DNA from: Zygophlyctis sp. KS116
Lineage: Eukaryota; Fungi; Chytridiomycota
Length of the DNA stretch: 32,000 nucleotides
Direction of reading: 5' to 3'
Assembly: GCA_054661495.1 (NCBI GenBank)
Contig: BAAFSQ010000097.1
Span: 1-32,000, forward strand
In this document: positions 1,143 to 31,348 of the stretch, piece by piece
Layout: each line of letters starts with the position of its first letter
How positions within the stretch are numbered: the first letter of the stretch is position 1
Notes under the pieces: model-generated
Seen by the model: the letters and a program-made list of their open reading frames with translations, nothing else
What the model was told of the DNA's origin: nothing
Database searches by the model: none
Program-made: the position numbers and the translations under genes

Positions 1143-1649
1143 CTGAATTTACAAACTGTGTTATACTGTTATACGTAATCACAGTTAGTGTTAGCATTCC
1201 AATATTTGAAATAAACATAACCTCCAAAGATAAATTAAAAATGGAGGAATCTTTTCCTATAATACTACTTTGGTAGTTTTTTGACTGATATTTTTCATGA
1301 TGGTTTCATAAAATTATACTTTACTATCCATCTTATTTCTGCATGAATACACAATGACTATCATTTTGAAACTCAAGTCCTCTTTGCTAGAATAATGATA
1401 AAAGTGAATCTTACGGGAAGAATTAAGAGCACACATAAATCTCTTTGCGGGAATTAAACTTGGACAAGGCGAGTTTTAGTTAGATGGCTGAATTCTGTAA
1501 ACGGAGACATGGACCAAATAGAATAGGATGTTTTAATTGTTGCAAAATTAGTCAATTCAAAGTTTATCCGGACATTGATGGTTTGTTAATTTCGGACAAG
1601 TTAACGCCAACCAATCTAAGTAATACTCAATTCGACTATTAATACATAG

Positions 1650-2758
1650 CTAATGATTCTTCTTCACAAATTGAAAAATCTATAATAGACCTAAGGAATA
1701 CATTCGCATCTATATTCTCAAAACTTCCTCCAAAATTGACAATTTTCATTGGAAGCTGGAACATGAATGGACGTGTACTTGTAAAGATTCTAAAATATAG
1801 ATCCCAGATACAGATCCTCATGCGTTTTTAGATCATTTCAATGTTAAGAATGAACATCCAGATTTATTAATAATTGGAACCCAGGAATGCGAAAGACCCC
1901 TTGAAATATCAATATTCTTCCCATCAAAGGACGAATGGGAAAGAATACTTCATTCGCATTATTCAAAATCTTATCATTTAGTTTCAAATCAATCGTTTGG
2001 TATTTTTTCTAAATTTCAAAGATTTAGGTGGATTACATCTCTCTATTTATGCCAAAAAACAAATTATGACTGCAATTTCACGTACTTTTAGATTGTTCAT
2101 ATTAGATGTTAGCATTGGAAAAGTACCAACTGGAGACGGAGGACTCTCAAACAAAGGGGGAATAGGAATCTCTTTTCGGTTTCATGAATATCACTTTTTA
2201 ATAATCAATTCTCATTTATGCGGTAACAAGTCAAATCTTACATTAGCACATCAATCAAAAATCAGGGAAAGAAATCATGATTTTGAAAAAATTGAAAAAG
2301 GACTAAATAGCCTGAAAGGAAAATATAATCGTAAAATACAATTTCCAAATCATGCATCAGATCGCTATGATTATTGTTTCTGGCTTGGTGATTTAAATTA
2401 TAGAGTGGATGGAACTCATAAAATCATCTCTAAGTGTATTCAAGAAAACAGATTGGAAGTTTTATTAAATAATGACCAACTCTTGAAAGAAATGAAGAGC
2501 TCTAAAGGTGTTTTTAAAGGGTTCAAAGAGGAAACAATATCGTTTCTTCCAACTTACAAATTCATTAAATCAGAGTATAGCATAGGAAGAAATTCATCAT
2601 GGAGTAAGATTTTAGTATTTAAGAGTATAGCTGATCGAATACTATTCAAACAATTTAATGAGCATGCAATTGTCAAATGTATGTATTATACGAGCATACT
2701 AAATACATTTGGATCAGATCATCAGCCAGTTGTATCATCATTCACATTAGAATTTTAG
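1650..2758 (+). CDS. Inositol polyphosphate 5-phosphatase (single catalytic domain, possibly INPP5E-like); start not resolved
   Basis: Motifs IFIGSWNMNG, IIGTQEC, NKGG, INSHLCAH, FWLGDLNYR, FLPTYKF, SWTDRIL, SDHQPV are restored by introns 1775-1800, 2000-2027, 2082-2105, 2223-2246, 2604-2630. A further tentative intron lies at 1620-1649. Confidence 0.9.
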
Positions 2759-3040
2759 TCCGCAGTTTGGACAATATTTGAAGCTGGGATCACTTCTAAT
2801 ACCACAACCAGAACATATAGAACCAGCGGATCCTAATCTTCTCAGCTGATATATGGGATTTCCATAATGACAGGAATCGCAAACAGTTATAGTCTTTGAT
2901 GAGATTGTGAGTAAAGGAAATATAAAGATGTAAAGGATACTTTCAATCCGCTCTTCCCTTGCATTGATTGAATTGCAAATGGGGCATGTAATGTTTTTAA
3001 TGGATTTAGTTTTTGGCAGAATCCCACCAAAGAAAAACAT
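2747..3040 (-). CDS. Small double zinc-ribbon protein (zinc_ribbon_15-like)
   Basis: MFFFGG start, CPIC..CDSC with a hydrophobic FIFPL segment, and a C-terminal CSGC..FKYCPNCG ribbon. Confidence 0.75.
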   Translation of the reverse strand: MFFFGGILPKTKSIKNITCPICNSINAREERIESILYIFIFPLLTISSKTITVCDSCHYGNPIYQLRRLGSAGSICSGCGIRSDPSFKYCPNCGLKF

Positions 3041-3233
3041 TTAAAGAGCTTATTATTGACCTGAGCCATTCTCCCCATATCCAGTGCAATCTTTCAAGTG
3101 GAAGTTGTGCATTCAAACATTTTAAATGCCAGATTTACAATGGCATAATTCATCTCAAATATCAGTCAAAGAATTCTTGATAAGAAAAAGTTATTCTTCA
3201 AAACAACTAGAAAACATGTGAGTTTCGGACATT

Positions 3234-3509
3234 TCACATAAACAACATTGCCATAAGCATTGTAATGAATGAAGGAATCGTCTCTGAGACCATATATCCA
3301 GCTGCAGACAGAGTTTCACTTACAGCTGAATCGTCAGTTCCTCTTGTAGCAACATCAGTAACTGGGAAATAATGTTTCTCAGTAGCAGTAGCAGGACTGG
3401 TACCCCCTTTTAAAACAGGTCTGGTACCCCCTTGTAAAGGATGAAAAGCTTGAGCAGTAGAAATGGCAGCGATAGCAAATAATGACAAGAATAGAGTTTT
3501 GGAGTTCAT
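3234..3509 (-). CDS. Small secreted, possibly GPI-anchored hypothetical protein
   Basis: N-terminal hydrophobic signal (MNSKTLFLSLFAIAAISTAQA), S/T-rich middle with a 9-aa duplication (LQGGTRPV/LKGGTSPA), hydrophobic C-terminus. Confidence 0.7.
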   Translation of the reverse strand: MNSKTLFLSLFAIAAISTAQAFHPLQGGTRPVLKGGTSPATATEKHYFPVTDVATRGTDDSAVSETLSAAGYMVSETIPSFITMLMAMLFM

Positions 3510-3908
3510 TTTTTATTTTTAAAGAATTCATGCGGCAATCGGACGCCAAAAGCATCAATTTCTATTTATAGAACAAAACCGTAGAAACTGATCTTGTTTA
3601 GAAAATACCAAATAAAACCATGTTTAACCTTGCATTTTAATAGAAATCTCAATTTTGCCATCAAAATCAGATCTGTTAATTCTAAAGCACACTGTGAAAA
3701 CTATAAATTGCGGCATACGACAATCTACCGTTTATGAATTGATTAGAATGAGAACTCTAGGGAAACCTGAGAATTGATCACTTGAAAAATATAATAAAAT
3801 CTATAATAATCTAAAAACCATACAATGCATACAATGATCAGCAAGAGAGTTTAGAGAATAACTATCGCCTAGAACTAGATCTAAGACTACAACTTGTAGA
3901 ATCTCAAA

Positions 3909-4559
3909 ATGAACAAGTATCAAAAAGAATTATTATACATGTACTCTATTCTAATTTTTGTAGGATGTCTATTGGGAGAAAGTATTAATTTCCCATCATT
4001 TTACTTTTCCGAAAAAAAAAACTTTTTAAACCAAATCTTTGTAAAGAATGGATGGGCATGGACTATATCATTACTCTTATCATTGATTTATTTAAGATCT
4101 TTTAACCGACTTAAGACCCTAAAATCACTAAAGTCCTTAATCGGAGCAACTTTATATTGGTTTTTGATCACTCAATGGACCTTTGGACCTTCCATTCTTG
4201 AAAGAGTTTATAAAAGAATTGGATCTTGTTCATTATTACATTTAAAAGAATTTCATTTATGTTATGAAGGCGGTGGAGAATGGGATGGACTAGATATTTC
4301 CGGACATTGTTTTTTACTATTGCATTCTTCATTGTTAATCTGGGAAGAGATTAGAAATACTTTTTCAATGAATTTATACAATTTAAAAAACTTTAATAGT
4401 ACAATGGCGATTGGAATGGCATTAATGATTTTATTAGGATTATGGAGTATAATGCTTCTAATTACAGTCTTGTATTTTCATTCAATAGTTGAAAAGGCTT
4501 TAGGAACTCTTTTTGGTTTTGGATTTTGGACTTTTGAATTTCTCCGCAAAAGTAGATGA
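3909..4559 (+). CDS. SCS3: FIT (fat storage-inducing transmembrane) / Scs3-family protein
   Basis: NFLNQIFVKNGWAWT, DISGHCFLL and YFHS..EK motifs; several hydrophobic segments; intronless. Confidence 0.88.
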   Translation: MNKYQKELLYMYSILIFVGCLLGESINFPSFYFSEKKNFLNQIFVKNGWAWTISLLLSLIYLRSFNRLKTLKSLKSLIGATLYWFLITQWTFGPSILERVYKRIGSCSLLHLKEFHLCYEGGGEWDGLDISGHCFLLLHSSLLIWEEIRNTFSMNLYNLKNFNSTMAIGMALMILLGLWSIMLLITVLYFHSIVEKALGTLFGFGFWTFEFLRKSR

Positions 4560-7217
4560 ATCCATTCATTCAAATTGATAAAAAGAATCCATTCTTATCA
4601 GAGTCTGATGAAGATAGTCCTCCAAGACTTCCTCCAAGACCAAGTTCAATTAACTTGTTGTCCGAAAAGAGTTCAAATAACTCTGGGCCACCGCTTCCAC
4701 AACGTCCATCAGCATTAAATTTACATTCGTTTGGCTCGGAACCAACTTTAAGGACAGATAGACATCTATCTCATATGTCATCTGTTGATAGATTGGTTGC
4801 TCTCTCACTCAAAGAGCCAGTATCTCATCCAGACTGTTTAAAATCAACTAGAAATCTTCCTAGAGCCTCTGGTCATTCAAGCCATAAGGGATATGTAAAA
4901 TGTTGGGATATATCTTCGAATTGTATTGTTACTGGATCTACAAATATTAGAGTCTTTAATATTTATTCTGGTGAAAATAGTAAAACGATTCCTCTGGGGG
5001 AGTCAAAGCCGTCTAGCGTCGCGTTTGTACCAACGAGGCCTTTTCAGGAGGAAGATGTAGTATGGGTTGGTTGTGAAAAAGGGGAATTATTGGAAATTTC
5101 TATCGGACAAGGTAAAATAATCTCAAAAAGAAGTTTACATTCTACAAATGTGACTAGTATAATCAAATTTAGAAAAAGATTCTTGATTACTATAGATGAA
5201 CAAGGGGCATTGAAAATATGGACAGAATTAGACTCTAGAGGACTTATAAATTTACATGCTAGGCCTAGAGGTTTAAGGATTCATTCTAAATTAGGGCAAT
5301 TGGTAGATACTGTAAGTAAAAAAAATTAAATACTCTAGTATAGGGATTTACTTTGGGTTGGTAGTGGGAAATTATTGCAAGTTTATAATTTGGCTCCTGA
5401 TGTTCCTTCTGTTCTTTTAAAGAAATCTGAATTAAGTTTACAGTTTGGGAATATATCTTCAATGACGCATTTAGTAGTTGAAGAATCTATTTTTTTATTA
5501 ACAGGTCATGATGGTAAAGTTATTGAATCTTTAAAGATAAAGATGGAAAAATAGTTGAATGGAATACTCAAGATTATAGTAAAAATCGAATATTTCAAAC
5601 TGGGATTTACAGGGTCACTTGTTTACTAGCAGTTGGTCCGAGTCATCTTTGGACAGGAGTTTCTACAGGAAAAGTATCAATTTATGATTTGTCAAGTGAT
5701 CCCTTGAATCAAATAAAGGAATTTCAGGCTTATTCAAGTTCTCCAATCCAGGGTTTTAGCTTTAATGAAAAAGCAATGTTGCAGTCTTCAAATTATTCTA
5801 TTTTTAGTTTGTCTGAACATGGGGAATTTTTAGAATGGGATGGATATTTGGCAGATGATTATATAGGTAATTTTTTAATCTAAAAAATTAGACGCTCTGG
5901 TTAAAAGTAGACAAGATTCATATTGCCAGTATCAAAATGTCTTAATACAGATCTGTAGCTGGAATTTGGATTCTAGAAAACCACTAGATTTAGAAGCAAA
6001 TGATGGTTCATTCATTGAGAAATGGATTTCATTACAAGACGAACCAGATATCATTGTGTTTGGATTTCAGGAGCTTGTGGATTTAGAATCGGTGTGTTTA
6101 TTAAGATTTAATTATATAGACTTCTGTAAATGCTAAATCCTTTCTGAATATTAAATCTACAAAACCGTCGAGTAATGATCCAGAGCAAAGATGTGCTTTA
6201 TGGAGAGAATATCTACAAAGATGCATCTCCCGATCTCATCCCACACTTAGATATAAGCTTTTGGAATTTCATGCCATGGTTGGACTTTTTCAAGCAATTT
6301 TTATTAAAGAGTCTATAGCACATCGAATTGGACATTGTCAAGTCAATACAACCAAAACAGGTCTTGGAGGTATTCTTGTTTCTAATAATATAAGGCTTAC
6401 ATGGTAATAAAGGTAGCATTTCAATGCGTCTACTCATTGATGACTCTTCATTTTGCTTTATCAATTCTCATTTGGCTGCTCATCAATCAAATATTAGTGC
6501 GAGGAATAACGATATCTCTGCAGTTTTAAAGGAGACATCGTTTAAGGTAGATAGCTCGGGACACCATTATATTGGCGGCGGGGATGGCAGTTTGATACTT
6601 GACTGCGAGAATGTATTTTTTGTAGGCGATTTGAACTATCGAATTGATTTACCAAGGGCTAAAGTGATGGACCTGATTAACTCAGGCGATTGGGAGTCAT
6701 TACAGGTATTTTTTCTTGATATTCATAAGTTAAGGAGCATGATCAGCTATTAAATCAGTTACATAATAATGTTGGTTTTGGTTTACGGGGATTTCTCGAA
6801 GGCCCTTTGGAATTCGCCCCAACTTTCAAATATGATCGTGGTTCACAACTATATGATACGAGTGAAAAGCAGCGAGTCCCTGCTTGGTGCGACAGAGTAA
6901 ATATTTCAAACTTATGTTAGATATTGTGGCGCGGCTCTGATATCCAGCTTGTTTGGTATGGGAGGCTTGAATGTCAAATGAGTGATCATCGACCCATTCG
7001 AGGCACCTTCAGGATCAGGACTAAACTTATTGACAAACCTTCATTTGATCGTGTTCTTGACTCTGCGATCGAAACAGCAAATGCATATATGAAAACTCAG
7101 TCACGAGAGTATTGCATACAATGGACATCAGTTATGGCAAACTGTAATATTGAAGAGGCAATTACTTTACTGCAATCATCAAATTGGGACTTGTGTAATA
7201 TATTTAAAAAACTATAG
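4556..7217 (+). CDS. WD40-repeat inositol polyphosphate 5-phosphatase with N-terminal NPF/PxxP motifs (8 exons)
   Basis: WD-like repeats ([24 protein letters not shown]), then [66 protein letters not shown]. Introns 5312-5338, 5514-5542, 5867-5891, 6092-6119, 6370-6394, 6706-6734, 6897-6920. Confidence 0.92.
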
Positions 7218-7255
7218 ATGTGTAGATTTATGTTTGTTTACAGCGAGTGTTTACA

Positions 7256-8059
7256 ATGTCCAATATTGAGCATAATAAGAATTTGTACCTTTGTCAAATT
7301 TTACCAACTCTTATCAAAGATATAAGTTTCTCAGACAGGAAAAAGATCTTTAAAAGTTGTGATAAACAAGAGGGGAAAGATGTCCGAACACTAAACTACA
7401 AAAGGAAACTCCAACAATACCCCATTAGAACTTCTGATCATATTCGGCCTACATCGGCTTTATCTAGTCTCAAACCATGGGTAGACTATTCCTCTCACAA
7501 TCCTTCAGACACCTTGCGGCGAAATATACTTCAGCCAAGCCCGATTCTAGAGGCTGTCCAAGATTGTTCAACCAAACTTGATAAAGATCAGAGTCATGTC
7601 AAAAATATTAGTGAAGATTATCTACAAACTGAACATATAAATCATAATCATGCGCCAATCTCTCAAAAGATGAAGCCTCTAAAACAGAAAATACCTTCAA
7701 GGAAAAATCGTTTAGCAAAGGAAACTTTGAATTCTCCATCTAGGCCGCCTCTTCATTTTCCCAAACACATTGTCCAGAAAAGGTTTACTTCGGATAATGA
7801 ACTCCCATTTGCGTTTACAGGACCAGTTCCTGTTTCAACCATCAAGGAATTCAAAAAACCGACATTATCAGAAAAAAAAGTATTAGAATCAGTTATAGCA
7901 ATGCCTATTGATCTGTTAGAGAAGCTTTCATTGAAGTTGAAGAGGAATGAGATTCTTACAAATGATTATTCTAAAAAGGTCCATAAAGTATCGAAAGTCA
8001 AGACTGAAGCTGAATTAGGAAAATGGATTCTCTCACAAAACAAAAAATTCAACAAATAG
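7256..8059 (+). CDS. Hypothetical basic, low-complexity protein
   Basis: About 267-codon open frame from ATG 7256 in AT-rich DNA, filling the gap between two genes; no motif recognised. Confidence 0.65.
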   Translation: MSNIEHNKNLYLCQILPTLIKDISFSDRKKIFKSCDKQEGKDVRTLNYKRKLQQYPIRTSDHIRPTSALSSLKPWVDYSSHNPSDTLRRNILQPSPILEAVQDCSTKLDKDQSHVKNISEDYLQTEHINHNHAPISQKMKPLKQKIPSRKNRLAKETLNSPSRPPLHFPKHIVQKRFTSDNELPFAFTGPVPVSTIKEFKKPTLSEKKVLESVIAMPIDLLEKLSLKLKRNEILTNDYSKKVHKVSKVKTEAELGKWILSQNKKFNK

Positions 8060-8063
8060 ATTG

Positions 8064-8970
8064 CTAATAATTCCTTCCTCTTGGAGGCGGAGGAGATCTT
8101 TTGCGACCTTGATCATATCTCCTGCCACCTCTATAAGGTTCACGTTCCCTATAAGGTTCTCTTCTTCTAAAATGATCTTGAGATCCTCTCTCTGAAGAAG
8201 GTTTTGAAATTCCATATCCTGCAGCTTTAAGTTCTTCTAATTTCTCTCTAATTTTAACGAATCCTACATGCATTTTTCCAATAAAATGATCAGCCAATCT
8301 TCGATCAGAATCAAATATACTTAATGAAGCACTACATCTATAACATAATCTAAGTTTTTGAGTTTGTGTAGCACCTGCCCCAACTTCAATTAATTTCAAT
8401 TCATGCTAGACCATTAAAAAATTAAAAGTTTACTTTTACATGAGCCAATCTATCTTGTAGATACTGAAAGATATGCAATAATCTTATAGCTTCTTCAATA
8501 TTTCCTTCTTCTCCGACAGTTTGACATTGTTCCAGTACTACTAAAACTTCATATTCAATATCTGATTTTTCTCTAATGAGCTGAGTTGCTTTTGGATCTT
8601 CCAAAGTAACTTTATCCATTTTTTTAAGAGTCTGTTGAGATTTTCGATCACATTCATCAATAAAAGACAGTAAACTTAATGCCCAATCATTTTCATATCC
8701 TGGATGTTTTTCGGCTGCTTTTTCTGCTTCGTAATCTGCCTTTAGTCGATCTGAATGTGTTAATTTGCAACTTCCAATGTCCATTTTAGTATTTAAAAAC
8801 AAATCGTTCGGACAAAGTCCACACAAGAAATCTTTACAAACTGTGTTTTAATTGCCAAATTCATAATTACCTGATGGATCAGAAAAATGAACAGTCGGGA
8901 CTTTAGATCCATGCAATGCTTGTTTCCCCATCAGAGCTTCCAAAAGCCTTCGCTGTTCCTCTGCAGACAT
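8064..8970 (-). CDS. LUC7: U1 snRNP-associated splicing factor Luc7 (3 exons)
   Basis: MSAEEQRRLLEALMG, ZnF1 CKDFLCGLCPNDLFLNTKMDIGSCKLTH, ZnF2 C..C..LSIFDSDRRLADHF.GKMH, R-rich tail. Introns 8841-8870 and 8406-8433. Confidence 0.93.
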
Positions 8971-9102
8971 TTAAACCGATTTGCTGAAATTACTTTTCCA
9001 ACAATGCAAACCTGCAACTTGATCTACTCCTGAAACTTACTCAAAAGTCTTAACTCACCAATTGTTATCATTGCATATGATCATCAGTAATAACAGCATT
9101 TT

Positions 9103-12849
<3,747 letters not shown>

Positions 12850-12895
12850 TAGTTTTTTGTAAGGTTTACAGTCAGGATTTGGGTTTTAAGTGTTT

Positions 12896-14736
12896 TTATT
12901 CCATAAACTTAAACTCTGCAAACAAGAGTTTTTTGTTTTCTACTCTCTTTTCAAATGCTATCCATTCATCTCTACGCTTTTTATAGAGATCCCAATGTGA
13001 TTTAGATAAAATAAATTTCCCATAAAAATCATTAAGTAATTCTACTTCACATTCTAATAATTCCTTTAAGAATATTTCTTTAGTGGAAATATCACTAACA
13101 AGCCAAAGCTGATCCAAGACGCGTGATCCAATTTTATCTTTTGCTAAAGAAACTAGAGATCCACGAAAAGATAATAAAAGTTTCTTTTTTGATTTGAATT
13201 CAAATTTACTTTCTAGAAAACTTGATAAAATTCTTGATAAAATAGGATCCATTGACCATTTTTTTAATGAATTAGAGTCAAGTGAATAGATTCCATTCAA
13301 TATTGTTGTTAATAGACTAGGCTTGAATTTCATCAAATGTTGAATTAATAATGATCCTTGTAAATTTGGTTTTCTATACTCTAGAAAAGTATTTGAATTA
13401 AATAATACTAGAAATATTAATGACTGTTTAGGTGCATCAGGACTTAAACATGTTAAAAGTTGATTGATAAAGTATTCTTGAAGGTTTTCAAAAGGAATAC
13501 ATGCTTTTGCAATCATTGATAATAGTCCAATTCTGTTTTGATGTATAAATGATTGAAAACAAGGTGACAATTCTTTAATAATTTTTAAAAGAGTTTTTTC
13601 TCTAGGGACATTTTCAATCAGTCTTTGAACAACAAAGTTTGCAACGGCATGTTCAGAGAGTTCAATCAAATGGTTCTTGAATAATAGTCTGTATAAGCCC
13701 TTCCACAAATCTTTGGAAATTACAGCAAACACTTTTTCCATTAAATGCGATCCTACAGAATCATGAATTAATTGATTCAAGAATCCAAAATCTTCATCTT
13801 TGAAATTAAAACTTCAATTTTACCTTTTAAAAGTAATTTAACCAAAGACTGACTGAATTTTTCATTCAAAATTAAAATCTGAAGAACTGGATTTGCATTT
13901 TGATTAAACGCCAATTGTTTAATGCAATCATTATTTGATTTTAAAGTTTTCATGATTGATTTAGTGATTTGATTCAAAATTTCAAGAAATTTATCAGATA
14001 CTTTACGCGATCCAACAGAAATCCTACTAATCTTGTGATTAGAATTGTATTTTTTAGATTTTTTAGACTTGTTATCACTTAAATCAGATCCTGATAGTAA
14101 ACAAAGAAATGTTCTCAACACATGTGATGCATAAGTATCCGTCATGAATTCCACCCAGTCTCCATTCAAAGCCTTATAAAACCCTAAAATAAAATCATTC
14201 ATTGACTCCAACTCTTCTTCACCTTGTAATTCAACATGAGAGTCCCCTTTATCTTCCCTAGCAACTACATCAGCAGCAATGACCAATAGAGTCTGAAGAA
14301 CATGACTTCCATAAGCATCTCTAATTAGCTCCTTACACCTACACCTAATCTTGCTGGCAAAAGCTCTGAGTTGAAAATCATTTGAAACCATCAGTAATTT
14401 TTCTAGAATTCGACAAGCTTCGAAATCGCATGCAACTTCAAATTCACAGCCGTCAATTTCCCTATAAATATTTTGAATGATCATTTCCATCTCTTCCGCC
14501 TCCTTTTCGTCTGCAGAGTCTAGCAATTCTTCCATTGAGAGTAAATAAGCTTTTGTGTCCGATTCTAATTGTACTTGGGGCGAAGGGAATGCAACCTCAT
14601 TGATCTCATCCATCTCATCAAAACCAACATTTTTTCTTCCTCTTGCTCCTCTTCTTGTCTTTTTGATGATTGGCTCTACAGATTCCTTTTGGGCTGATCC
14701 GCCTCTTGATCCTCTCTTCCGCTTAACTTCCGACAT
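12896..14736 (-). CDS. NOP9: Nucleolar protein 9 (Pumilio-like repeat, 18S rRNA maturation)
   Basis: Repeats YGSHVLQTLL, YASHVLRTFL, VGSHLMEK, ANFVVQRL, GSRVLD. A 26-nt intron at 13798-13823 joins the two ORFs (K-DEDFGFLNQLIHD). Confidence 0.88.
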
Positions 14737-14769
14737 TCCAAAAAAATAAAAATTTTAGTCAAGAAAATT

Positions 14770-16440
14770 TTATGGTTCATCTGCTCTCAATCCACTCTCT
14801 GCTCTGCCTATTAAATAGTATCCAAGTGTTAATTTAAGTATTGTAACCCAGACAAATGCACCCAGAATTCTTAATAAGAACCATAGACTCTGATACGTAA
14901 CATCCATCATACCCAAGGTTTGAACGATGATTCGCGTACAGAGACATGCAAGAGGAATAGCAACGAATCCTATTCTTCTCGCTACATGAGGAGATCTGTC
15001 TATGACAACCTAAACAATATTAAAAAAAACAAAATACCAAATCACTGAGTGGATCAGAGATTGCTTCTGACCCAGCGTGTAATAGCCATTTTAACTCCCA
15101 TTTTGGTCTTTTACTATCTTGAATGATTGGTTTCCCAACTATATCTCTAAAAATAGTTTGTGTAAATTGATAGTAAATTGAAGCTGGTATATCATTAAAC
15201 TAATCTTTAGTCCAACGATCTTACTTTTGTGATGAATGCATGTTTTAAATTATCGACTAAAATTTCAACTCCAAAAACATATAAAGCCGGAAATAGAAGA
15301 GTAATAAAAAGTTTATAAGTAGACGAGCCTTGAATATTTTGAATAACTTGAACTATATCAGAAAGCATTTCACCAAAATAAGAACTTATAAATGACAAAC
15401 TCTGAAAATTAAGTGGTTTAGATGATGTGAATATTGTGATTGAAATGTCATGAAAATAAGACAAAACTTCATCCACTCCAGCGCCACCAGTCATTTCCAA
15501 AAAGTTTCTAATAATGATTAGAAATAAGTAAGCAAATAATTGAAATCTTTCCAGTGCATCTAAGCGTTAATGAAATAATGTACCAGCGCAAACAATGCTG
15601 AACAAATTCCTTTCTTCACATTTCTTAAACACCGAAGACTTTATTTCTATGAAATTGCTTGACAGCATAACTGGCAAAAGTGCAGAAGAGTAAGAATTAA
15701 TAGCAACATTTAAAGCAACCATTTGGTAAAATATTACCATTGTATGAGCAATTATAGTTACAAGTGCAGTAATAAAATATGTTTTTGTACTCGAGTATTG
15801 ATTTGACTGGCAAGAAACACTAGAATACAATGAGTCTAAAATATCATGTCCGAAAGCAGATCCCTTTAGATTATTATCTAATACTACTTACAAGTCTATT
15901 CAAGACATCTAGGACATTAAATATTACGTACAATTTGATGACTGCCTGTCCTCTTATAGAATGATATAACATTGAAGGATCCACGTATGAAATTATAATA
16001 CAAGTAATTAAAAATAATACCATTTTTATCAAATCACATTTTTGAGCTGGTTTAAGATCATTTTTCTTAAGAAAAGCAATTATCGCAATTAAAGATCTTA
16101 GAAATAATTTTAAAAAAGATCAATACCTTATGGGGAGAATAGAAAACACGTACAAAAATGAGTCTAAACAGACCAGAAAACCATACCATAAAAACCGTTC
16201 GCATTCTTTGGGAACTTTGAGAAAGTTTTGAATTCGTTTGTTGAGTTGTGGATTTACCATTGAGAGAAGATCATTGCTGCTGAATTCTGAGAATACATAA
16301 GACATAAACTTGCCCAGACCGCTTATTGTCTTTGGCTGCGCAAGAAATGATTTTGAGTCTGGAACAACTGCATCATCATCGTCACTGGAATTATCAAATG
16401 AACTTCTTGGCCGTTTTGGAGCTGGAAGAGGAGAATCCAT
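14770..16440 (-). CDS. TAPT1: TAPT1/Emp65 (DUF747) membrane protein (6 exons)
   Basis: GFLVCLDSFLYVFSILPIR, YHSIRGQAVIKLYVIFNVL, LNVAINS, SNFIEIKSSVFKK, EILVDNLKHAFITKFN, ARRIGF motifs. Introns 16097-16126, 15864-15891, 15560-15583, 15200-15224, 15010-15037. Confidence 0.9.
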
Positions 16441-16568
16441 AAAGATCCTAACCGTTAAACTCAGACTTTTAAATCTGCCATCTAGACATGCAGATAAACC
16501 GAAATCTAGATTAAAATTGAATTAATTCATATTGTTTTAATAGAAACTGTGAGTTAAAATTGCAGCGG

Positions 16569-18971
16569 TTATTGATCCATGGCTGAAAGCGTATAATCAA
16601 GTAAATATGACTGCTTGATAAGTTCCTTTGAATGATCAAAATGTCTTTCAGTATAAATTAGCAAAGCATCAAAGACTGATTTGGAATTGGGTACTTTCAT
16701 AAGTCTTGATGGTTCAAAAGATTTTAAAATTAGATTCAAAACAGATTGAGCAATAGGTGCAAATGTGGCCTTTGTGTTCCAATCCCGGACAAAAAGTAAT
16801 AATCTTTCCAGCTATTATTAAAATTTAAAATTAATCTTACTTGTTCATCATTTAAATTTCGAATAATATTATCCACACTATGCAAACCTAAAATACTATC
16901 TTCATCTTGTCTTTTCTGTCCCAATGAGGATAAGATTTTTAAAAGTCTAACAGGGTGTTTTAAATTTAAAGCAAGATGAATAGCATTTGAATAATCCTTT
17001 TTTGAAAGATAAAATTCAAGGTCTTGTTCTCTAGTTATAAGAATGTAATATATAATACTTTATCAACTTATTTTGTAACTCTCTCATTTCTTCTTCCTTT
17101 TCTTCAGTTGTAGTATCTCTCCAAATAGTTATTTTAGAATCTGCAGATCCAGATACAAGAAGAGATTCATCATTGTTTGTGCAAAGCCCCCAAATCTTAT
17201 ATTAAAATCATCATATAATTACCTTGTCTTCATGGTTATCAAGAGTTGTGACACATTCATTTTCTTTGATAGTCCATAACTTAACAAGTCCATCTGATCC
17301 ACTCGAAACCAGCTGTAGTCCATTAGTTAGGAATTCTACATGCAAAACAGAATTCAAATGGCCTTCAAAAGTTCTGATGCAGGAATAGTCTTTAAGACTC
17401 CACAGTTTAATTGTTTTATCAGTAGAAGATGTTGCGACGATTTGATCCGATGGAGAAAATCTAACACACCAAATTCCTCTTTTATGCCCCGTAAGAGTTC
17501 CAAGAAGAGTCCCGTCAGCTGCAGACCAGATCTTTGCTGTCTTATCAAGGGCTGCAGATGCATATATTCTGTCATTAGGAGCTACATCAACAGACTGAAT
17601 ATCCTTTGAGTGTGCTTTTATGGTGTAACGGGCCTTTACAGAGAAATTTTCATCCTCCATCAATTCCAAGTCCCACAGTTTCAAAGTACTATCATGCGAA
17701 GCTGTAATAACAAATGCAGTACTTTTGCGAGAAAATGCAGCAGCGCTAACAGTCTCTGTATGACCAATACACTTTCCAGCATTTTTGAATCTTGAAGTTT
17801 TTGAATCTAGCTTCCATATAATCGCAGAATTGTCTTTTGATCCCGATACAATCAATTTACCATCTACTGATTTATTCATTGACATAATCATATCAGAATG
17901 TCCACATAATATTTCACAAAATGCTGATCCTAATTCATAAATCCGAATATGTTCCGTATTAGTGGCAACAGCCAATTTTGAATTATCCTCTCCAACAAAA
18001 AAAGTTTCAGTAATTTCTTCGTTGAACCCAGCGATTTGCCTTGTAGGCTCAAAGTTATTTTCCAAGCTATAAAATAACAAATTCTGATCACTTGTGATCG
18101 CAACAATTTCCATGGTAGATGGACAGTATAAAAGACTTGCTATTGAATAATTAATTTGATAATTCTCATTTGTCTGAGAAATACAAGTCCCAGAGTCCAT
18201 ATCCCAGAGCTTAACCAACCCTGATTCACCACCGGCACAAACTGCAAAATCCACAGAATTTGATTCAACAACCTTGACATCTTCTATAGACTCAAAAACA
18301 GGAATTGTATTGATAAGTTCCCCATTAGATAAGTTCCATGAAATTAAAACCTTGTCTCTCCCACCAGAAACTAAAACTTGTCCATCTCTAGAAAAACCTA
18401 GACCTCGAACAGCACTGACATGTCCGTCCAAAGAAAACAATTCACTTTTTGAATGCAAATCCCAAACTTTTATTCTAGAATCCAGTGATCCTGAGCAAAG
18501 ATGCAAAAGATCCGGATCGGGATGAAATGCAAGAGCAGTAATGATTCCAGCATGACCTTTAAAATTATGAGTGCAATATCCTTTCCTAATATCCCATACT
18601 TTTACTGTGGAATCAGCAGATCCAGTTGCTACAAAAGTTTGAGTCGGATCAGTATCCATCACTAAAACTGGTGCTTCATGAGCTTTCCAAGAGGAAATAG
18701 TTGAATCAGTTAGTGAATAGACCCTCAAGAGAAGACTTGAGCTAGCGGTGATCAGAAAATCATCAGTTGATGCAAAGCAAGAGACTGCATCATCATCCGA
18801 TCCAAAAGTTCTTTTTTCTCCTGAACTTGTATGAATCAAATGCACCTTGTCCCCATCAGTACATAGTAATCTCTCTCCATCAGGTAAAAGCTGAATCTTT
18901 CCTCCTGTATAGACTGATTCTATAGTCTTTTGAATTCCAAAACTCTTTTTTAGATTGCTGACTGAAGGCAT
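16569..18971 (-). CDS. UTP13: U3 snoRNA-associated WD40 protein Utp13/TBL3 (4 exons)
   Basis: YTGG start motif, many WD40 repeats (GHKRGIWCVRFS, FEGHLNSVL), C-terminal YTERHF..L..SYLLDYTL. Introns 17196-17222, 17031-17058, 16812-16840. Confidence 0.92.
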
Positions 18972-19194: not shown

Positions 19195-20418
19195 TTAGTA
19201 GCATGAACATTGAGCACAGCAAATATAATCAAGCATATCAGTTAGTTTCTTGTATTGTTGTGCGATATATTCATATCCACTGACATAATTTTCGATATTC
19301 TCCTTATTTTCCTTTAGTTTTTTAAGCTTTTTGGCAGCCTTAATACGAGTTTTCTTGGAGAATCCGAATGTTTTTTTAGTCTTGAGATACCCAGAGTACG
19401 CTTTTAAACCATATTTCGCAGCTGCGACCGGACCGACTAGTTTTACCACAGGATGGTTTCTGTATTTCATGTGAATATCCACGGCTTTGATAACTTGTTT
19501 GTAAGGTTTTGTTATTTTCTTGCGGACAAATTCCTCCAGGGTATATTCCTTGTCTTGAGTAGGTTTTTTTGGGGTTTCCGAGGATGTATCAGACGCCTTT
19601 CGCAAATCTTCATTGTATTGAGATGGAGTTTTTCTAGTTCCTGGAATAGATGGTTCAGGGAATGTTGGTATTGATGGAATGTTTGGTCTTTGAGGAATCT
19701 GTATTGGCGGATGTTCAGCGTTTGCAATGTTTGGTAGGTCCACCGGATTTGAAGGAGGCGGAACCCCAGGAGAGACTGCATCATCAACTGATGTGATCGA
19801 ATTTTTTGATGGTTTTAGTAGGAAAGAAAATGAATATCGTCTCTTAGTAATAGTTTGGTCTGGGTTCAGAGTTTGGACAAGCTTGAAAAATGTGTTATCC
19901 AAGGTGTTCAATAGAAGATCTACATTTGAAATATCTGCCTCTGTATCATTGGTAATTGTGAGTCCTGAAGATTCATTCAGCCAAATGTGGTTGTTGGTTT
20001 CATTCAACATGAAAAAGTTTTGATTTGTATTTACAGCTGCATCTACTATATCATGATATGCCAGGAAATGCATGCACTCTTTGTAGTAGTTTTTGTAAAT
20101 ATCGGTAATTAGAAATGTTTCTTCCAAAGATACTGTTTCATTTGCTAAAGGTTGAGGAGATAGTGAAAACTGCGATTGGTAAGCTTTATGAGCAGAATCA
20201 TTGGCCATATTCTCGATCACTTCATCAAATGTCTTAATATATACATCATAAGTAGCATTTATGGCATGCTCCATTGCAGAAATATTTAAAGCATCCTCCA
20301 CCAAAGAATAATCAGGGTCTTCATTTATCACAGAAGTAGTCATTGGTAAAATAGCTTGTGAGATGGATGCATTGCCTGCTTGAACAAGTAAGATTATAGT
20401 TAGCAGTATAGATAACAT
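19195..20418 (-). CDS. Secreted hypothetical protein, 407 aa
   Basis: Signal peptide-like MLSILLTIILLVQAGNA, acidic N-half, KRR site, Pro-rich then Lys-rich C-half, ends CCAQCSCY; intronless. Confidence 0.75.
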   Translation of the reverse strand: MLSILLTIILLVQAGNASISQAILPMTTSVINEDPDYSLVEDALNISAMEHAINATYDVYIKTFDEVIENMANDSAHKAYQSQFSLSPQPLANETVSLEETFLITDIYKNYYKECMHFLAYHDIVDAAVNTNQNFFMLNETNNHIWLNESSGLTITNDTEADISNVDLLLNTLDNTFFKLVQTLNPDQTITKRRYSFSFLLKPSKNSITSVDDAVSPGVPPPSNPVDLPNIANAEHPPIQIPQRPNIPSIPTFPEPSIPGTRKTPSQYNEDLRKASDTSSETPKKPTQDKEYTLEEFVRKKITKPYKQVIKAVDIHMKYRNHPVVKLVGPVAAAKYGLKAYSGYLKTKKTFGFSKKTRIKAAKKLKKLKENKENIENYVSGYEYIAQQYKKLTDMLDYICCAQCSCY

Positions 20419-24329: not shown

Positions 24330-25285
24330 CAAGTGATGAAGGACTAAAGACTTACTCTGATTCTACGTGGGAAGATGATAAAATGAATAGATTGTCAAGA
24401 AGTGGGGGTGTTATACTATATAATGGCTCATTTCTATCAGCTTATTCTCATCAGCAACGATCAGTCGCTCTATCTTCTTGTCAAGCAGAGTATCAAGCAC
24501 TTGCTAGTGCTGTACAAGAACTACTATACTTTAGGCAATTATTAGGGGAGATAGGATATGGTGAGAATATACCAACACAGTTACTCTGTGACAATCAAGG
24601 TGCCATGTGTTTAGCGATTACTACTAAGAATCACCCAAATGTGAAACACATCGCTATCAAATATCATTTTGTAAGAGAATTGGTGAAGGACAAAATAGTG
24701 AATTTACTCTACGTCAACACAAGAGAACAAGTTGCAGATATAATGACTAAACCGCTTGGCCGCACTCAATTTGAAAAATTTAGGACGATGATGGGTGTGA
24801 ACAACTATAATTTACAATAATCATTAAAATTCCTACACAATGCCATAGTAGAAGTACTATTGCAAATATACAGTAATGGGGGTTTGACAAATTACTGTGA
24901 TGTGGCGTATGGGGTGAAGAAAAATTAGGAATCCCTTGGTGATTACGAAGGTGCACTTTAAATAAGAAATAAATGATTCTAAAATCCTGTCATATTACTG
25001 AAATATAAAATCCTGTTAGATTAAGAGTCTCAAAGAAAGAAAGGAAAATTTATTTTATGGAAATAAAGATTACTGAATTAAGTTGATCAAATGCTCATCT
25101 ATGGACACAAAAAATTACTTCTGTTTTTCATAGAAGCAATACTAATGAAAGAAAGCGACTCCTACTTTGACTCCAGCAGCTGACGGAGAACAAATATCTG
25201 AAAAAGAACAAATTCAACTAGAAAAGTGGATAAGTGCAGATAATATAGCAAACTCTATCATACACGTCTCATTGACTCCATCAGA
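24330..25285 (+). mobile_element. Ty1/Copia remnant: RNase H, PPT, short LTR (about 24885-25018), then gag fragment
   Basis: YSDSTW, SVALSSCQAEY, CDNQGA, KHIAIKYHFVRE, QVADIMTKPL; ggggg before TGACA at 24885; downstream W...D.IANSII.SL gag-like frame. Confidence 0.8.
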
Positions 25286-25292
25286 AACAAAG

Positions 25293-25975
25293 CAGGGGCC
25301 TCAAGAAGAGACCAGATGTCTTGAATTTCTTTTGAAAATTGTAGGAGGAAGCGCTTTAGTCATAATATCAGCCTCATTTTGGTGTGTAGAGACATGAGAA
25401 ATATTGAGATTGCCGTTAGAGACATGATCCTGGATAAAGTGATAACGCACATCGATGTGTTTGGTGTGAGAATGATCCTTTGTACCTAGAGTTAATTTAA
25501 TAGCCCCTTGATTATCTTCATAAATAGGAATAGGACTATTATGAGGTTACCCAAAATCAGAGAGTACATAGCGCCTCTTGAGCTGCAGTTGAAAGTGCCA
25601 TATATTCGGCTTCTGTGAAAGAAAGTGCAACTGTTCTTTGAAATTTACTAGCCCATGAAACATGACTTTCACCTAAAAAATAGACATACCTTGTGGTTGA
25701 TCTCCTACTATCTACATCACTTGCCCAATCTGCATCAGTAAAACCCTAGAGTTTTAATTTAGATGTACCACCCAAAACTACTCCATGATTAATCGTTCCT
25801 TTTAAGTATTTAAGAATTTGTTTGACAGTTGTCCAGTGAGATTGTCCAGGATTTTGCATATAACGACAGACTTGACCAACAGCATTTCCAATATCTGGAC
25901 GAGAACCAGATACAAGATATAATAGACTGCCAACGGTTTCACGAAAGGGAATCTTGGCCATTATTTGGGGCATAT
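25293..25975 (-). mobile_element. Ty1/Copia RT-end/RNase H fragment (degenerate)
   Basis: [51 protein letters not shown] with frameshifts. Confidence 0.9.
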
Positions 25976-25979
25976 GTCT

Positions 25980-27580
25980 ACAAGTTCAATAGTTACACCA
26001 ATTTTAAGATATTATTGGTGGCCAACTGTGGAACGGGAATTAAGAATTTTTACACAACGGTGTCCTAAATGCCAGTTAAACTAAAGTCATAAAGCTAGTA
26101 CAGCCAATCATTCTCCATTAAAACCCATTCCGCCAGTTGGTCTACCTTTCGAACGTTGGGGGGTGGATTTTATTGGGCGATTACCTGAAACTAAATTAGG
26201 CAATAAGTACATTATAACAGCAATAGACTATGCTACTCGATGGGTTGTAGCAAAGGCGGTGAAAGATATGACTTCTACAACTGTTGTTGATTTTCTTTAT
26301 AATGATATAATTATGCATTATGGCGTACCTATTGAATTATTTACTGATCGCGGCAAGTCATTTCTGTCAGAAGGAATTCAAGAATATTATTCAAGAACAG
26401 GAATTCATCATATAGCTACTACAACTCACCATCCTCAAACCAATGGCATGGTTGAGAGGATGCATTCAATAGTAAATCATTTAATAACGACTTTGGCAGA
26501 TGCTCAAAAAACAAGATGGGATGAATTTCTCAACATGACTTTATTCGCTTTAAGAGTTAGACAGCATACTACCACGAAGTACTCACCTTTCTGTTTGTTG
26601 TATGGTGTCAACCCAAGATTGCCAATTGACCCAAGACCCCCTCCGGATACAGTACAAGCTTTAGATGATGTGGAATTACTTGAATTTCAAGGTTTATTCA
26701 CTGCTGGGGAACTTGAAGACTTGGGACATGATCATGCTGCAGCTTACAAGCACACGTTGGTTCAGGCCGAACAAATGAAAAAACGGCATAACATTGATGA
26801 TAATCAACCAGATTACTAAGCTCAAACATTGGGATAAATTAAAGTTCGAATTCAAATGGAAAGGTCCTTTCCATATTGCTAAACTAGGAAAGCCAGGGAC
26901 TTATTGGTTAATTACCCTCGCGGAGACTTCTTGGAATCAACAGTTAATCAAAGTGATCTAGCACAGTGGTTGGCAACGACGCCTGATAATGAATCTTATT
27001 TCTATGATGGTACAATTCAACATTCTTCTGCAGCTTCCCTTAGTTTGAAATCTTCAACTGTCAATGGTGACACAGATCCTGCTCTTCAATCCATTGGCTC
27101 TGGTCTTAGAAGGGAGGATATTGTTATAGCGTAAGTCCTACACACGTGCAAGGGTCTTGTGACATAGTTTGCGTTTGTGTTTCAGATACATGCAAATTTG
27201 CTTGAAGGGCTAACCCTTCTTTTCTTTTTTTTAGTTGGATTATCAATCAGAATCTTTTATTTTCGAAAGAGATTTACATTGCATTTGAGTTATACTTACT
27301 TAAATTTGCAATCGTTATAGCAAAGTTTGTTACACTTCACTCCACATACTACTCAATATCTGAAAGTGGACCTCAGCGGCTTCTCACGGCTGATTTTCTT
27401 TATTGTTTGGACACGTGTTTGGGATGCATATTTTATCTAAAGTGTCTAGGATTTAGTTGTACATTTAACAAAGTTCATATCTATCTTGTTCCTTGTTAAT
27501 CTTGTGTGCTGAGTTCTGATTCTTGTTGAACTCTTATATTTTCCAGTCTTGTATTGTTATCTCGCACTTGTCTCGTAACA
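25980..27580 (+). mobile_element. Ty3/Gypsy 3' part: integrase, PPT and 3' LTR (27122-27580)
   Basis: CPKCQL zinc finger, WGVDFIG, TDRGKSF, HPQTNGMVER, KWKGPF; purine tract agaagggaggata then TGTTA...TAACA. Confidence 0.88.
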
Positions 27581-27863
27581 TCTTTACACGTTATGTGAAT
27601 TTAGGAACTGATTTGGGTCTGGATGAAGGCTAATGCCTAGGAGCCATGTACTAACCTTTTTACTCCCTGTAGCAGAGTTTTTACGGGTGGTACTTAACGT
27701 GGCGTATTTTACCTCTTTTGGGAGGTTTATCTTAAAAAGTCATCTCAGTGAACTAATCAGTCGAATCGAATTGAGAACTCTTGTCTGAACTTAATTTTAT
27801 TCATTCTTTACCTTGAAGAATTGCTATCTCTAGTTCGTAAGAAGGTGCGATTTTCCAAAGTTA

Positions 27864-28239
27864 TGTTACGATTGGATGTCTTTGATGGGAAAGGTCAAAG
27901 ATAACTAGCATCGTAAACTAACTAAACAAGTTGGAAGTGGAATATGATTTAATTAAGCAATGGGAATAATAAAAAAAAAAGAATAATGATCAGATAATGC
28001 TTAATTGCAAGAAGAAATAGAATACTGAAGCTTAACTAGTTAATTCGACTATGAGAGTCATGAAACAAGGGTTACGCCTATTTATCATCATTATGTTTCA
28101 TAAAATCAAATTATACGTTTCAAGAATAATCCTTCGTAGATCAGCTACATACTTTGAGCATTGACAATAAAACTCTAGTTTAAGATTTAGGTCTGAGGCA
28201 AGTTCAGAATTAAGGGTGTACGATCCTGAGATCGTAACA
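27864..28239. mobile_element. Probable solo LTR (376 bp)
   Basis: Perfect 9-bp terminal inverted repeat TGTTACGAT...ATCGTAACA; flanks gtta/atta (4-bp TSD with 1 mismatch). Confidence 0.65.
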
Positions 28240-28344
28240 ATTATGTTACACTCTCTCGCGCTTCACATGGTTTAGAGGCTAGTTTGCTTAGATGCTGGAT
28301 TGATCGTGATAAGAGTTAAAAGTAAATCTCAGTAAGTCTTATAA

Positions 28345-28403
28345 CTAGGAAATATAAGATTATATTTTGCCTTACCTAGGAAATATAAGATTATATTTTG
28401 CCT
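28345..28403. repeat. 28-bp direct duplication (period 31) in the Copia 3' LTR region
   Basis: ctaggaaatataagattatattttgcct at 28345-28372 and 28376-28403. Confidence 0.9.
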
Positions 28404-31162
28404 AGGACGCGAAGCGCCTTTCAAATCAATACACTCCCACAGTTTCACAATGCCTGGCATGGAGAAACTGATACAATCATAATCCTATTAGGAGCCTCCC
28501 TGAGAGACAAGTAATTGTGAATGACGATTAAAAATAGTGGGTGGAAGTGCTTTTGTCATAAGATCAGCCACGTTTTGATGGGTATAGATATGAGAAACAT
28601 TAGTAGTACCAGTAGCCACATGATCCTGAATAAAATGATATCTTACATCGATATGCTTAGTTCTAGAATTATGGGTTTTAAGTTTTACTGCAGTCCAATG
28701 AGTATGTCCGGGATTGTGCATATATTTGCAAACTTGGCCAACAGCATTGGCGATATCAGGGCGAGAACCATATACTAAATACAACAAACTGCCAACCGTT
28801 TCACTATATGGCACATTTTGAATTTTACGCATATCTTCAGCATTATTAGGAGACATAGCAGAAGATAACTTGACTGACGGATTCATAGGAGTTGTCACGG
28901 TATTACAGTCAACCATTCCCGTCCTTTTAAGCAGGGTTGTAATATAGCGTTCTTGAAAGATTCTAATAACTCCTTTAGCCTGATTATAATCAAATTGTAA
29001 ACCCAAATAATGTTTGAGGCAGCCTAAATCTTTGACTGGAAGTAAATTTTTAATTGCAGATTTTAATTTGTCCATATTAGCTGCCCCAGAGATGGCTAGA
29101 GCGAGATCATCGACATACAGGGTGACATAGGCCTTGGTGCCATTAAAAATACCAGTATAAAGACATTGATCTTTGCGATTTGCTTTAAAACCTAAAGAAG
29201 AAAGTATATCATGTGCTTTAGAATACCATGCACGTGGTGCTTGTTTAAGGCCATATAATGCACGGTGCAATTTAACAATGGTCCCTGATAGATGACCAAA
29301 ACCATCTGGTAATCGCAGATAAACCTCTTCTTCCAATGGAGCTAAAAGAAAAGCTGTATCAACATCCATATTGTGGATTTCCATGTGCTTTGAGGCAGTC
29401 GTAGCTAGCATAACAAGAAAACTCACAAATTTAGCAACAGGAGCAAAGGTATTACCACAATCGACGCCATCAATTTGAGTAAAACCTTGGGCAACAAGGC
29501 GTGCCTTTTCTAAAATAGATCCATCAGCCAAAATTTTTTCAGTAAACACCCAACGCGATCCTACAGCTTTACGACCAGTAGGTAATGAACAAGGAGAGAA
29601 AACATTATTTTTGTGCAATGATTCAATTTATATATCCATAGCGATTTGCCATAGAGTGGGCTAATCGGACATTTGAGCTTGATTATAATTATTTGGAATA
29701 TTATCATGGGTTATATCAGCGAGAAAAGAACCAGCAGTAAAAGAAGCAGCAAGTAACGAAATTTGTGGAGGAGTTGTATCGCTACAAGATGGTGAATTGA
29801 TTTGATCCCGAGAACGAGTCCGAGTACTTATAGGTGGATCTTCAGGAGGAGAATGATCACGCTCTGGTTCACTGCATTCATAGCTATCAGAAGAAATTAA
29901 AGTAGAGGAGTTACTAGACGAAACATCAGAAGATAAATGAGATTCAATGGCACTTAATGAAGACATACTTGGTAGCTACATCGACAAATTTGACATTGCC
30001 ATTCCTAGAATCAGAAGAGATCGTAGAAAAGGGGCCTTGATAATCGGCTTCAAATAATTCACCAGAACAAACATTGAGATTATTTTGACTTATCCTAGGT
30101 ATATTTTTACGTATCATTTTGCCTTCTGCACAAGCTTAAAAGTTTATATAACCTAAAATTAAAAAGTTTATATAGTCGTGGCAGATCATCAAAAAATCGA
30201 TGACCCAATATCTCATGAGCTTCTGTCCAGGTTTTAGATATCAGAGAAGTAGCACTAGGAGAGCCAGGTTTAAGGCTAGTACAATGTGCAGTGCCCCCTG
30301 TCATATGTTGTGTACAACCAGAGTCGAGATACCACTCAGAATCCGGAGAAAGACACGAGTAACTTTAAGTGGTTTATTTTGCGAGCATCTGTAAGAGCCA
30401 GCTTGATGATAAAAATCTTTAAATCCCGCATCCCTACAGGAAGTGCACACAGGTTTAAGATGTGGATGACAACCAAAACATCGATCAATGGGATACTGCT
30501 TACCTGCTCTAGTTTTTTGCTTATTACAAAGTTTGACTTGTGTCAGGAGAGCAGAAGTAGTATCGTTTTCTTTGGATTTAAAGAGTCTGAGTTCTTGTAG
30601 AACTCGTAATTTTGCAGAGTCAAAAGAAGTAGACTTATTGTGCATTAATTCAGATCGAACTGAAAGAAGTTCATTAGGTAGTTTGACGAAAAGTAACATT
30701 AGAGAGATGTTGCTACCAGATAACCCATCAGAGGAATTAAAAGACGACATCAATTTAGTTAAGGTAAGAAGACTCTCTTCAACGTTTGCGTCCATTAGAA
30801 GAGTAAAATTAACAATATCTGTGAGCAATTGAGTTTTTAACAGCAGTGAGTTAGGTTCCAAATTACTTATAAGAGCATCCCACATAGAAAGAGAGGTAAG
30901 AGGTCTTGGGATATTCTTCAAGTAGGAATTTTCACAGAGTACACAACAATTAAACTTAAAATTTGAAAACTACAGAAGAAAGTTTTGGACGACTCGCATC
31001 CAAATCCCATTCATCATGATTTTGCAACAAGTCAATCGTATGATTTTTCCAACGAATAAAATTATTGGGCCCCTCTAGTTTTTCAAAGTCAGAGGGTATT
31101 AAAATTGTCTTTTTGTTTTCTTCAGTCATTTGAGGCAGTTTAAGAGCTTGGTGCTTATAACA
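28346..31162 (-). mobile_element. Internally deleted Ty1/Copia element (gag-PR-[INT deleted]-RT-partial RNase H)
   Basis: gag ATG 31129 (KLEGPNNFIRWK), protease WYLDSGCTQHMTG near 30300, RT KARLVAQGF, MDVDTAFL, ALYGLKQAPRAW, LYVDD, terminal ADLMTKAL; PBS-like TGTTATAAGC near 31153-31162. Confidence 0.9.
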
Positions 31163-31348
31163 GTGGTGTAGTTTTAATTTGTCTTTTCAACAAAGTTCTT
31201 TTGTCTTGTTCTTTGTGGTTGTTCTCTGAGTCCTATTTTAATTAGAGAATTATTGATACTACTATACTGTCCTTTTGATCCCTGTCCTTGCAACAGTTTG
31301 AAAAGACCTTTTTCTCCCGTTTGTGAAATACATCTCTGCTCTAGAAAA

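Follow-up and report, generated by a model that had tools for sequence, protein, structure and literature searches.

Introns of 24–30 nt in an aquatic chytrid are probably ordinary introns shrunk to a minimum size that differs among related fungi

We analyzed the introns in a 32,000-nucleotide (nt) stretch of DNA from the chytrid Zygophlyctis sp. KS116 (GenBank assembly GCA_054661495.1, contig BAAFSQ010000097.1, positions 1 to 32,000 of the forward strand; hereafter the window), which is contig 97 of a 12.73-Mb assembly of 1175 contigs. Seven window genes (an inositol polyphosphate 5-phosphatase gene, a WD40 + inositol 5-phosphatase gene, LUC7, USP7, NOP9, TAPT1, and UTP13) contain 43 GT-AG introns, each of which is 24–30 nt long. 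With a probability of roughly 0.8, these are ordinary U2-type introns of a compact, AT-rich chytrid genome that have shrunk to the minimum of its spliceosome, about 23–24 nt. The trait is not private to the window organism: it is also found in Boothiomyces, Gorgonomyces, and Globomyces, and it is absent from Batrachochytrium and from the relative L042 (ENA ERZ19566193).

The 43 introns comprise five of 24 nt, nine of 25 nt, three of 26 nt, seven of 27 nt, eleven of 28 nt, four of 29 nt, and four of 30 nt. An earlier note, made from the sequence alone, had reported 42 GT-AG introns of 24–30 nt with TAG, AAG, and CAG acceptors all in use. All 42 were found again (TAG 29, AAG 12, CAG 1), 22 of them (19 in USP7 and 3 in UTP13) being recovered without a length prior, and one further intron of 30 nt was located at 1620–1649, directly upstream of position 1650, where that note began. 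Excision of all 43 introns gave seven continuous reading frames, and the Pfam models were covered in order by successive exons. Only 7.5% of the alternative frame-equivalent GT..AG pairs (15–150 nt, around these sites) are 24–30 nt long, so the occurrence of 43 out of 43 introns in this size class is not due to chance. The USP7 introns came from a spliced alignment between the DNA and a profile built from 16 full-length USP7 proteins, in which any intron length from 12 nt upward was allowed without a prior, and the three UTP13 introns (27–29 nt) came from profile-guided spliced alignment under the same conditions. The other window introns were predicted by a self-trained ab initio gene finder, which missed one stop-free 24-nt intron that was supplied by homologue alignments. 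GC-donor calls of 33–48 nt in poorly conserved regions of USP7 were replaced by GT donors nearby, which in one case changed the length from 33 to 27 nt.

Sequence nearly identical to the window is present in two freshwater metatranscriptomes, in which the removal of two USP7 introns was observed. An RNA contig of run X2 lacks 25 letters at 10753, corresponding to intron 12 (10753..10777, minus strand, 25 nt), and an RNA contig of run X1 lacks 23+2 letters at 12444/12468, corresponding to intron 2 (12445..12469, minus strand, 25 nt); both contigs otherwise match the window with 0 mismatches. No retained introns were found in the matching metatranscriptome contigs, whose coverage is sparse. In addition, an in-frame stop was commoner in introns with a length divisible by three (3n introns; 28/37 versus 41/79, p = 0.016 over six assemblies; p = 0.056 for the window alone), as expected under selection for mis-splicing that is visible to nonsense-mediated decay.

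The same size class was found in a 200-kb sample from other contigs. The model-free distances from GTA(A/T) to (A/T)(A/T)TAG gave a sole excess at 25–28 nt (47–56 counts versus a background of 24 ± 5), and the gene finder gave the 24–30 nt peak even with a flat length prior. With learned lengths, 428 introns were predicted in 94 genes (2.6 per kb of coding sequence), with a median of 27 nt, below the 30 nt that defines ultra-short introns; 91% were ≤30 nt and 96% were ≤33 nt. The lengths are not fixed to within 1–2 nt but spread over 23–33 nt with a longer tail. About 4% of the predicted introns, about a dozen, exceed 33 nt, and several of 44–82 nt with the same 3′ architecture look real; no small nucleolar RNA was detected by Rfam in the loci carrying these longer predicted introns. 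The description of the tiny introns as genome-wide therefore holds on other contigs within this sample (1.6% of the assembly) but not for that 4%. In regards to the proposed tight length ruler, the lower edge is sharp, whereas the upper edge is broken by the predicted 44–82 nt introns and by TAPT1 intron 1, which is 61–66 nt in two relatives. The median intergenic distance in the sample was 105 nt, and the G+C content of the introns was 22%.

The introns share a simple anatomy. The 5′ site reads GTA(A/T), with GTA in 94% of the donors and weak positions +4 to +6, and the acceptors are TAG (68%), AAG (23%), and CAG (9%). As previously noted, there is no separate pyrimidine tract. A branch-like motif, (C/T)T(A/G)A, keeps its A between −7 and −10 in every well-sampled length class, the longer introns included; the (C/T)TAA motif of the earlier note was thus confirmed, but its spacing is far tighter than the "few to about 15 nt" before the AG given there. 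In 69% of the introns, versus 22% in shuffles, the final A of a T(A/G)A falls at −9 to −7; without branch weights in the model the share was still 67%, and it was 74–77% in the homology-only sets. The spacing from the branch to the 3′ end is nearly constant, so the introns differ in length chiefly in the segment that runs from the 5′ end to the branch. The predicted branch A falls at intron position 17–25 with a mode of 19 and a sharp floor, almost none lying below 17. The GT-AG ends of all 43 introns and the positions shared with long-intron orthologues are those of the major (U2-type) spliceosome, and the YTRA motif enriched at −10 to −7 has a complementary partner in the canonical GUAGUA of U2.

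We compared the introns with those of relatives by placing public protein models on the genes that encode them and by ab initio prediction over 22–37 kb. All 19 USP7 introns lie at equal positions and phases in the syntenic relative L005, about 15 do so in Globomyces, and 9 in L042, where the introns at the shared positions are 59–97 nt. These shared positions indicate that the USP7 introns stand at ancestral sites. Identity to L005 is about 55% in the intron cores and 82% in the proteins, and 13 of the 19 USP7 length differences are not multiples of three. The UTP13 intron positions are common to L005, L006, and Globomyces, and two also occur in Batrachochytrium, at 100 and 81 nt. The NOP9 intron (26 nt in the window) has homologues of 25 nt in L005 and 54 nt in L042. 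The five TAPT1 introns are found at the same positions in L005, with lengths of 61, 26, 25, 28, and 31 nt. TAPT1 intron 1, 30 nt in the window (16126–16097, minus strand), is 61 nt in L005 (L005:3308-3368) and 66 nt in L006 (L006:5999-6064), both close relatives, and short stretches near both ends are common to L005 and L006; an element that the window organism has lost may once have resided in this intron. The claim that introns were shrunk rather than lost does not stand in that form: loss occurred alongside shrinkage, as UTP13 has 3 introns versus 11 in Globomyces and NOP9 has 1 versus about 8. One USP7 intron kept in L005 (9622–9649), L046, and Globomyces was also cleanly lost in the window (between 10105 and 9509).

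The comparison of relatives that the earlier note had called for gave modes ranging from about 20 to about 100 nt. Boothiomyces, Globomyces, and Gorgonomyces, all of Rhizophydiales, share tiny introns with the window organism, but their modes differ. In Boothiomyces sp. JEL0866 (L047, GCA_027604345.1), ab initio prediction over 22 kb gave mostly 19–23 nt (mode 20–21) with the branch A at −6/−7, and the UTP13 introns in the public models are 20–23 nt, with one annotated at 34 nt. Gorgonomyces haynaldii is intron-poor, with introns of 19–20 nt and one 19-nt intron among the mapped models. Globomyces pollinis-pini has introns of 24–36 nt and a few of 65–99 nt (ab initio mode about 28). Boothiomyces and Globomyces are culturable saprotrophs. 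The introns of the relative L046 are 24–28 nt, those of L042 (42% GC) are about 60 nt, with 50–97 nt overall, and those of Batrachochytrium are 81–159 nt in the mapped models, with an ab initio mode of about 80–100 nt.

The window organism, described earlier as fungus-like, is an aquatic chytrid that falls in or close to Rhizophydiales. The first exon of UTP13, a long one, matched two environmental relatives at 83% and 81%, followed by named chytrids at about 53%. In the full-length UTP13 tree, the window organism and two relatives form a group on a long branch within the clade of Rhizophydiales, Spizellomycetales, and Rhizophlyctidales (98/98), as the sister of the sampled Rhizophydiales (87/87).

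To judge from their sequences, the small nuclear RNAs (snRNAs) and the tested core recognition factors look conventional. U1 snRNA is present as two tandem copies with an ACUUACCU end, and U2 (GUAGUA), U5 (canonical loop 1), and U6 (ACAGAGA, AGC) were found. U6 carries an extra UUCG-capped hairpin ahead of its 3′ U-run and a variant internal stem-loop, and U5 occurs as tandem variant copies with 5 full matches (loci behind the U6, U5, and U1 details: L029, G000:C436:156-268; L054/L055, C456 and C51; L027, C548). U1-70K, U2AF65, SF1, SAP30BP, Isy1, and LUC7 were all found; U2AF65 retains all three RRM/UHM regions, with an RRM2 very near that of human, and the N-terminus of Isy1 is conserved. 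RED_N (PF07808) had no match in the assembly, in a search that had no positive control and with assembly completeness not established. The tested factors were found except RED, and among them no loss of the U1 small nuclear ribonucleoprotein (snRNP) or of core factors of the microsporidian or Cyanidioschyzon type was seen. The proposed inventory of snRNAs and U1/U2AF/SF1 factors for loss or divergence is covered in part, with U1, U2, U5, U6, U1-70K, U2AF65, and SF1 conventional-looking. These components, together with named chytrids whose introns are equally short or shorter, do not support the earlier suggestion of an undescribed system.

The human B complex requires the 5′ site and the branch to lie about 52 nt apart (PMC6692369), and its canonical geometry cannot hold in the window organism because only 17–22 nt are on hand. 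With about 19 nt in place of 52, the geometry of assembly, or its order, would therefore have to be different. Short or absent extended U6/5′-site and U2/branch helices and an early release of U1 are candidate adaptations, and the changes would probably be modest ones within a conventional spliceosome. The argument that U1 and U2 could hardly bind such introns at the same time is reasonable on steric grounds and would apply most clearly to the B complex. Each intron may be read as one unit (intron definition), with the 3′ site picked by a fixed branch-to-AG spacing, the floor set by a minimum distance from the 5′ site to the branch, and the soft upper side produced by deletion bias or selection for compactness. 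The floor would then be lineage-specific and movable: about 20 nt in Boothiomyces, 24 nt in the window organism and Globomyces, and 50–60 nt or more in L042 and Batrachochytrium.

A hard minimum combined with deletion pressure fits the evidence better than a new spliceosome. Some points weigh against it: the RNA covers 2 of the 43 junctions, in low-depth environmental contigs that lack a matched DNA control; the sampled 200 kb come from the five largest contigs; the length prior of the ab initio model is self-learned; the branch points are located by motif; and no spliceosomal change that would explain the short distance was found in a partial protein inventory. A specialised spliceosome with a two-sided length ruler, in which bridging or activation factors such as RED/Smu1 were lost or remodelled so that it is tuned to 24–30 nt and performs poorly on longer introns, would agree with the narrow length mode, the separate mode of each species, and the missing RED_N match. 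However, the predicted 44–82 nt introns keep the same 3′ spacing, TAPT1 intron 1 is 61–66 nt in close relatives, Globomyces has introns of 26–33 and 65–99 nt within one gene, the RED search has the limits given above, and the Isy1 N-terminus is conserved, unlike that of Stentor; we consider such a ruler unlikely. It is very improbable that pseudogenes, assembly indels, or retained segments were forced into GT-AG boundaries. AT-rich DNA offers many GT/AG pairs, the assembly is fragmented, and 4 of the 43 introns are in frame and stop-free, but positions and phases are equal in up to five independent assemblies that differ in sequence and length, two introns are exactly missing from RNA contigs, the distance peak is model-free, and two of the stop-free 3n introns have counterparts in a relative that are not 3n (29 and 26 nt).

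In regards to the history of the shrinkage, intron size has probably changed more than once, because UTP13 rejects a single clade of tiny-intron taxa (AU, approximately unbiased test, p = 0.026) and the USP7 tree nests the long-intron L042 among tiny-intron taxa, nearer to the window organism than L046 (96/96). It is doubtful, on the same results, that a single shrinkage at the base of Rhizophydiales was followed by re-expansion in Batrachochytrium and L042, in place of several independent shrinkages. Both tiny-intron groups are nevertheless alike in architecture (branch A at −6 to −9), and USP7 does not reject a grouping of the window organism with L046 without L042 (AU p = 0.072). Both trees are single-gene trees with long branches that settle neither the number nor the direction of the changes, and neither topology separates repeated shrinkage from re-expansion. 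L042 is a candidate for intron re-expansion. More tentatively, chytrids in or near Rhizophydiales might represent an unreported fungal radiation in which the minimum intron size was reset several times (about 20, 24, 60, and 80 nt), free-living culturable species included and possibly with a return to longer introns. Identifiable changes in B-complex or activation factors, for example the loss of RED/Smu1, would then underlie the resets. If so, the mechanism of tiny-intron splicing would become approachable by comparison of close relatives.

Tiny introns of about 25 nt are known from Paramecium, where they are numerous and AT-rich with GT-AG ends, no pyrimidine tract, a narrow mode, and few stop-free 3n introns. 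The window organism resembles Paramecium and other ciliates in all of these properties; unlike them, it is a fungus with a clear YTRA branch motif and close relatives with introns of normal length. Stentor, with introns of 15–16 nt, has a full snRNA set (PMC9505925), in which it resembles the window organism with its U1, U2, U5, and U6, but the Isy1 N-terminus, reported as non-conserved in Stentor (PMC9505925), is conserved in the window organism. Myxobolid myxozoans and Dicyema, with median introns of 22–27 nt (PMC13644364), are similar in size range, the conserved branch-pairing region of U2, retention of U2AF65, and a branch A near the AG; these are reduced animal parasites, whereas the chytrid trait also occurs in Boothiomyces and Globomyces. 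Microsporidia are fungus-related and have short introns, but these are few and their spliceosomes are reduced, in contrast to the 2.6 introns per kb and retained U1 components of the window organism. Chlorarachniophyte nucleomorphs (18–21 nt) and mikrocytids (16–17 nt) also carry introns below 30 nt (PMC10245619). These are numerous, as in the chytrids, and the 20–21 nt of Boothiomyces equals the nucleomorph size; the window genome, however, is not extremely reduced, and its intron lengths have a wider distribution and a longer tail.

A 2026 account lists introns below 30 nt in ciliates, microsporidia, dicyemids, and myxozoans, with Microsporidia as the sole fungal exception (PMC13644364). The searched passages of a survey of 644 fungal genomes (PMC8476143) do not mention such short introns, nor does the main text of Amses et al. 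2022 (PMC9457484) mention introns, and in literature searches, beyond the reach of which most subscription papers lay, no paper describing tiny introns in chytrids came to light. The public gene models of Boothiomyces sp. JEL0866, Globomyces pollinis-pini, and Gorgonomyces haynaldii already hold introns of 19–34 nt at homologous positions, so genome curators may know of them. What the chytrids add is a case from true fungi that is rich in introns and whose close relatives form a graded series; introns of this size were already known in other lineages.

These introns raise the question of how about 19 nt, or about 14 nt in Boothiomyces, can suffice for a spliceosome whose known B-complex structure calls for about 52 nt. 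Ciliates and reduced parasites or endosymbionts that lack close relatives with long introns make up most of the known cases. In the chytrids, introns at shared positions range from 20 to 100 nt within a single fungal group, cultured species among them, and the causes are therefore open to comparison and test. The chytrid introns also weaken the tie between tiny introns and extreme parasitic reduction. In practical terms, aligners and gene finders with a default minimum intron or yeast models will fragment the genes of these aquatic fungi. Unrecognised tiny introns could explain the BUSCO gap in the metagenome-assembled genome of Rhizophydium megarrhizum, with 76.9% on the genome versus 40.5% on yeast-model proteins (PMC13391722).

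The seven genes are arranged as follows. The inositol polyphosphate 5-phosphatase gene (1484..2758, plus strand; 371 amino acids, aa) opens after excision of six introns at 1620–1649 (30 nt), 1775–1800 (26), 2000–2027 (28), 2082–2105 (24), 2223–2246 (24), and 2604–2630 (27), with its exons tiling PF22669; four of the introns are position-matched in the relative L045 (26, 29, 27, and 26 nt there), and the start codon and first intron are ab initio predictions. The WD40 + inositol 5-phosphatase gene (4556..7217, plus strand; 824 aa), an ab initio model with an open frame, has seven introns at 5312–5338 (27), 5514–5542 (29), 5867–5891 (25), 6092–6119 (28), 6370–6394 (25), 6706–6734 (29), and 6897–6920 (24); its exons cover PF22669 in tiles 1–41, 39–108, 112–200, and 202–253, and introns 1 and 2 are ab initio predictions. 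The other five genes lie on the minus strand. The U1 snRNP-associated LUC7 (8064..8970; 282 aa) has introns at 8870–8841 (30) and 8433–8406 (28), with PF03194 on exons 2 and 3. USP7 (9103..12849; 1079 aa) contains the 19 introns from spliced alignment, and NOP9 (12896..14736; 604 aa) has one intron at 13823–13798 (26). TAPT1/EMP65 (DUF747; 14770..16440; 511 aa; PF05346 tiling) has introns at 16126–16097 (30), 15891–15864 (28), 15583–15560 (24), 15224–15200 (25), and 15037–15010 (28), and UTP13/TBL3 (16569..18971; 772 aa) has introns at 17222–17196 (27), 17058–17031 (28), and 16840–16812 (29). A further 26-nt intron is predicted at 20839–20814 (minus strand) in a CTLH gene, the L006 orthologue of which has a predicted 25-nt intron.

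The UTP13-NOP9-USP7 neighbourhood (9103–18971) is kept in distant chytrids, namely Batrachochytrium, an ENA chytrid, and Chytriomyces, where the locus tags are adjacent. Gene packing is very tight: the stop of FIT and the next start overlap as ATGA (4556–4559), and the gap between TAPT1 and NOP9 is 33 nt (14736–14770). Three apparently secreted proteins are encoded on the minus strand at 1–983, 3234–3509, and 19195–20418; an apparently secreted protein of 407 aa had no Pfam match, and the protein at 1–983 has tandem repeats of 17, 15, and 12 residues and extends past the contig end. The region 24383–31603 holds broken remnants of long terminal repeat retrotransposons, with an integrase (rve) match at 26163–26816 and what appears to be a copia-like reverse transcriptase at 28488–29618.

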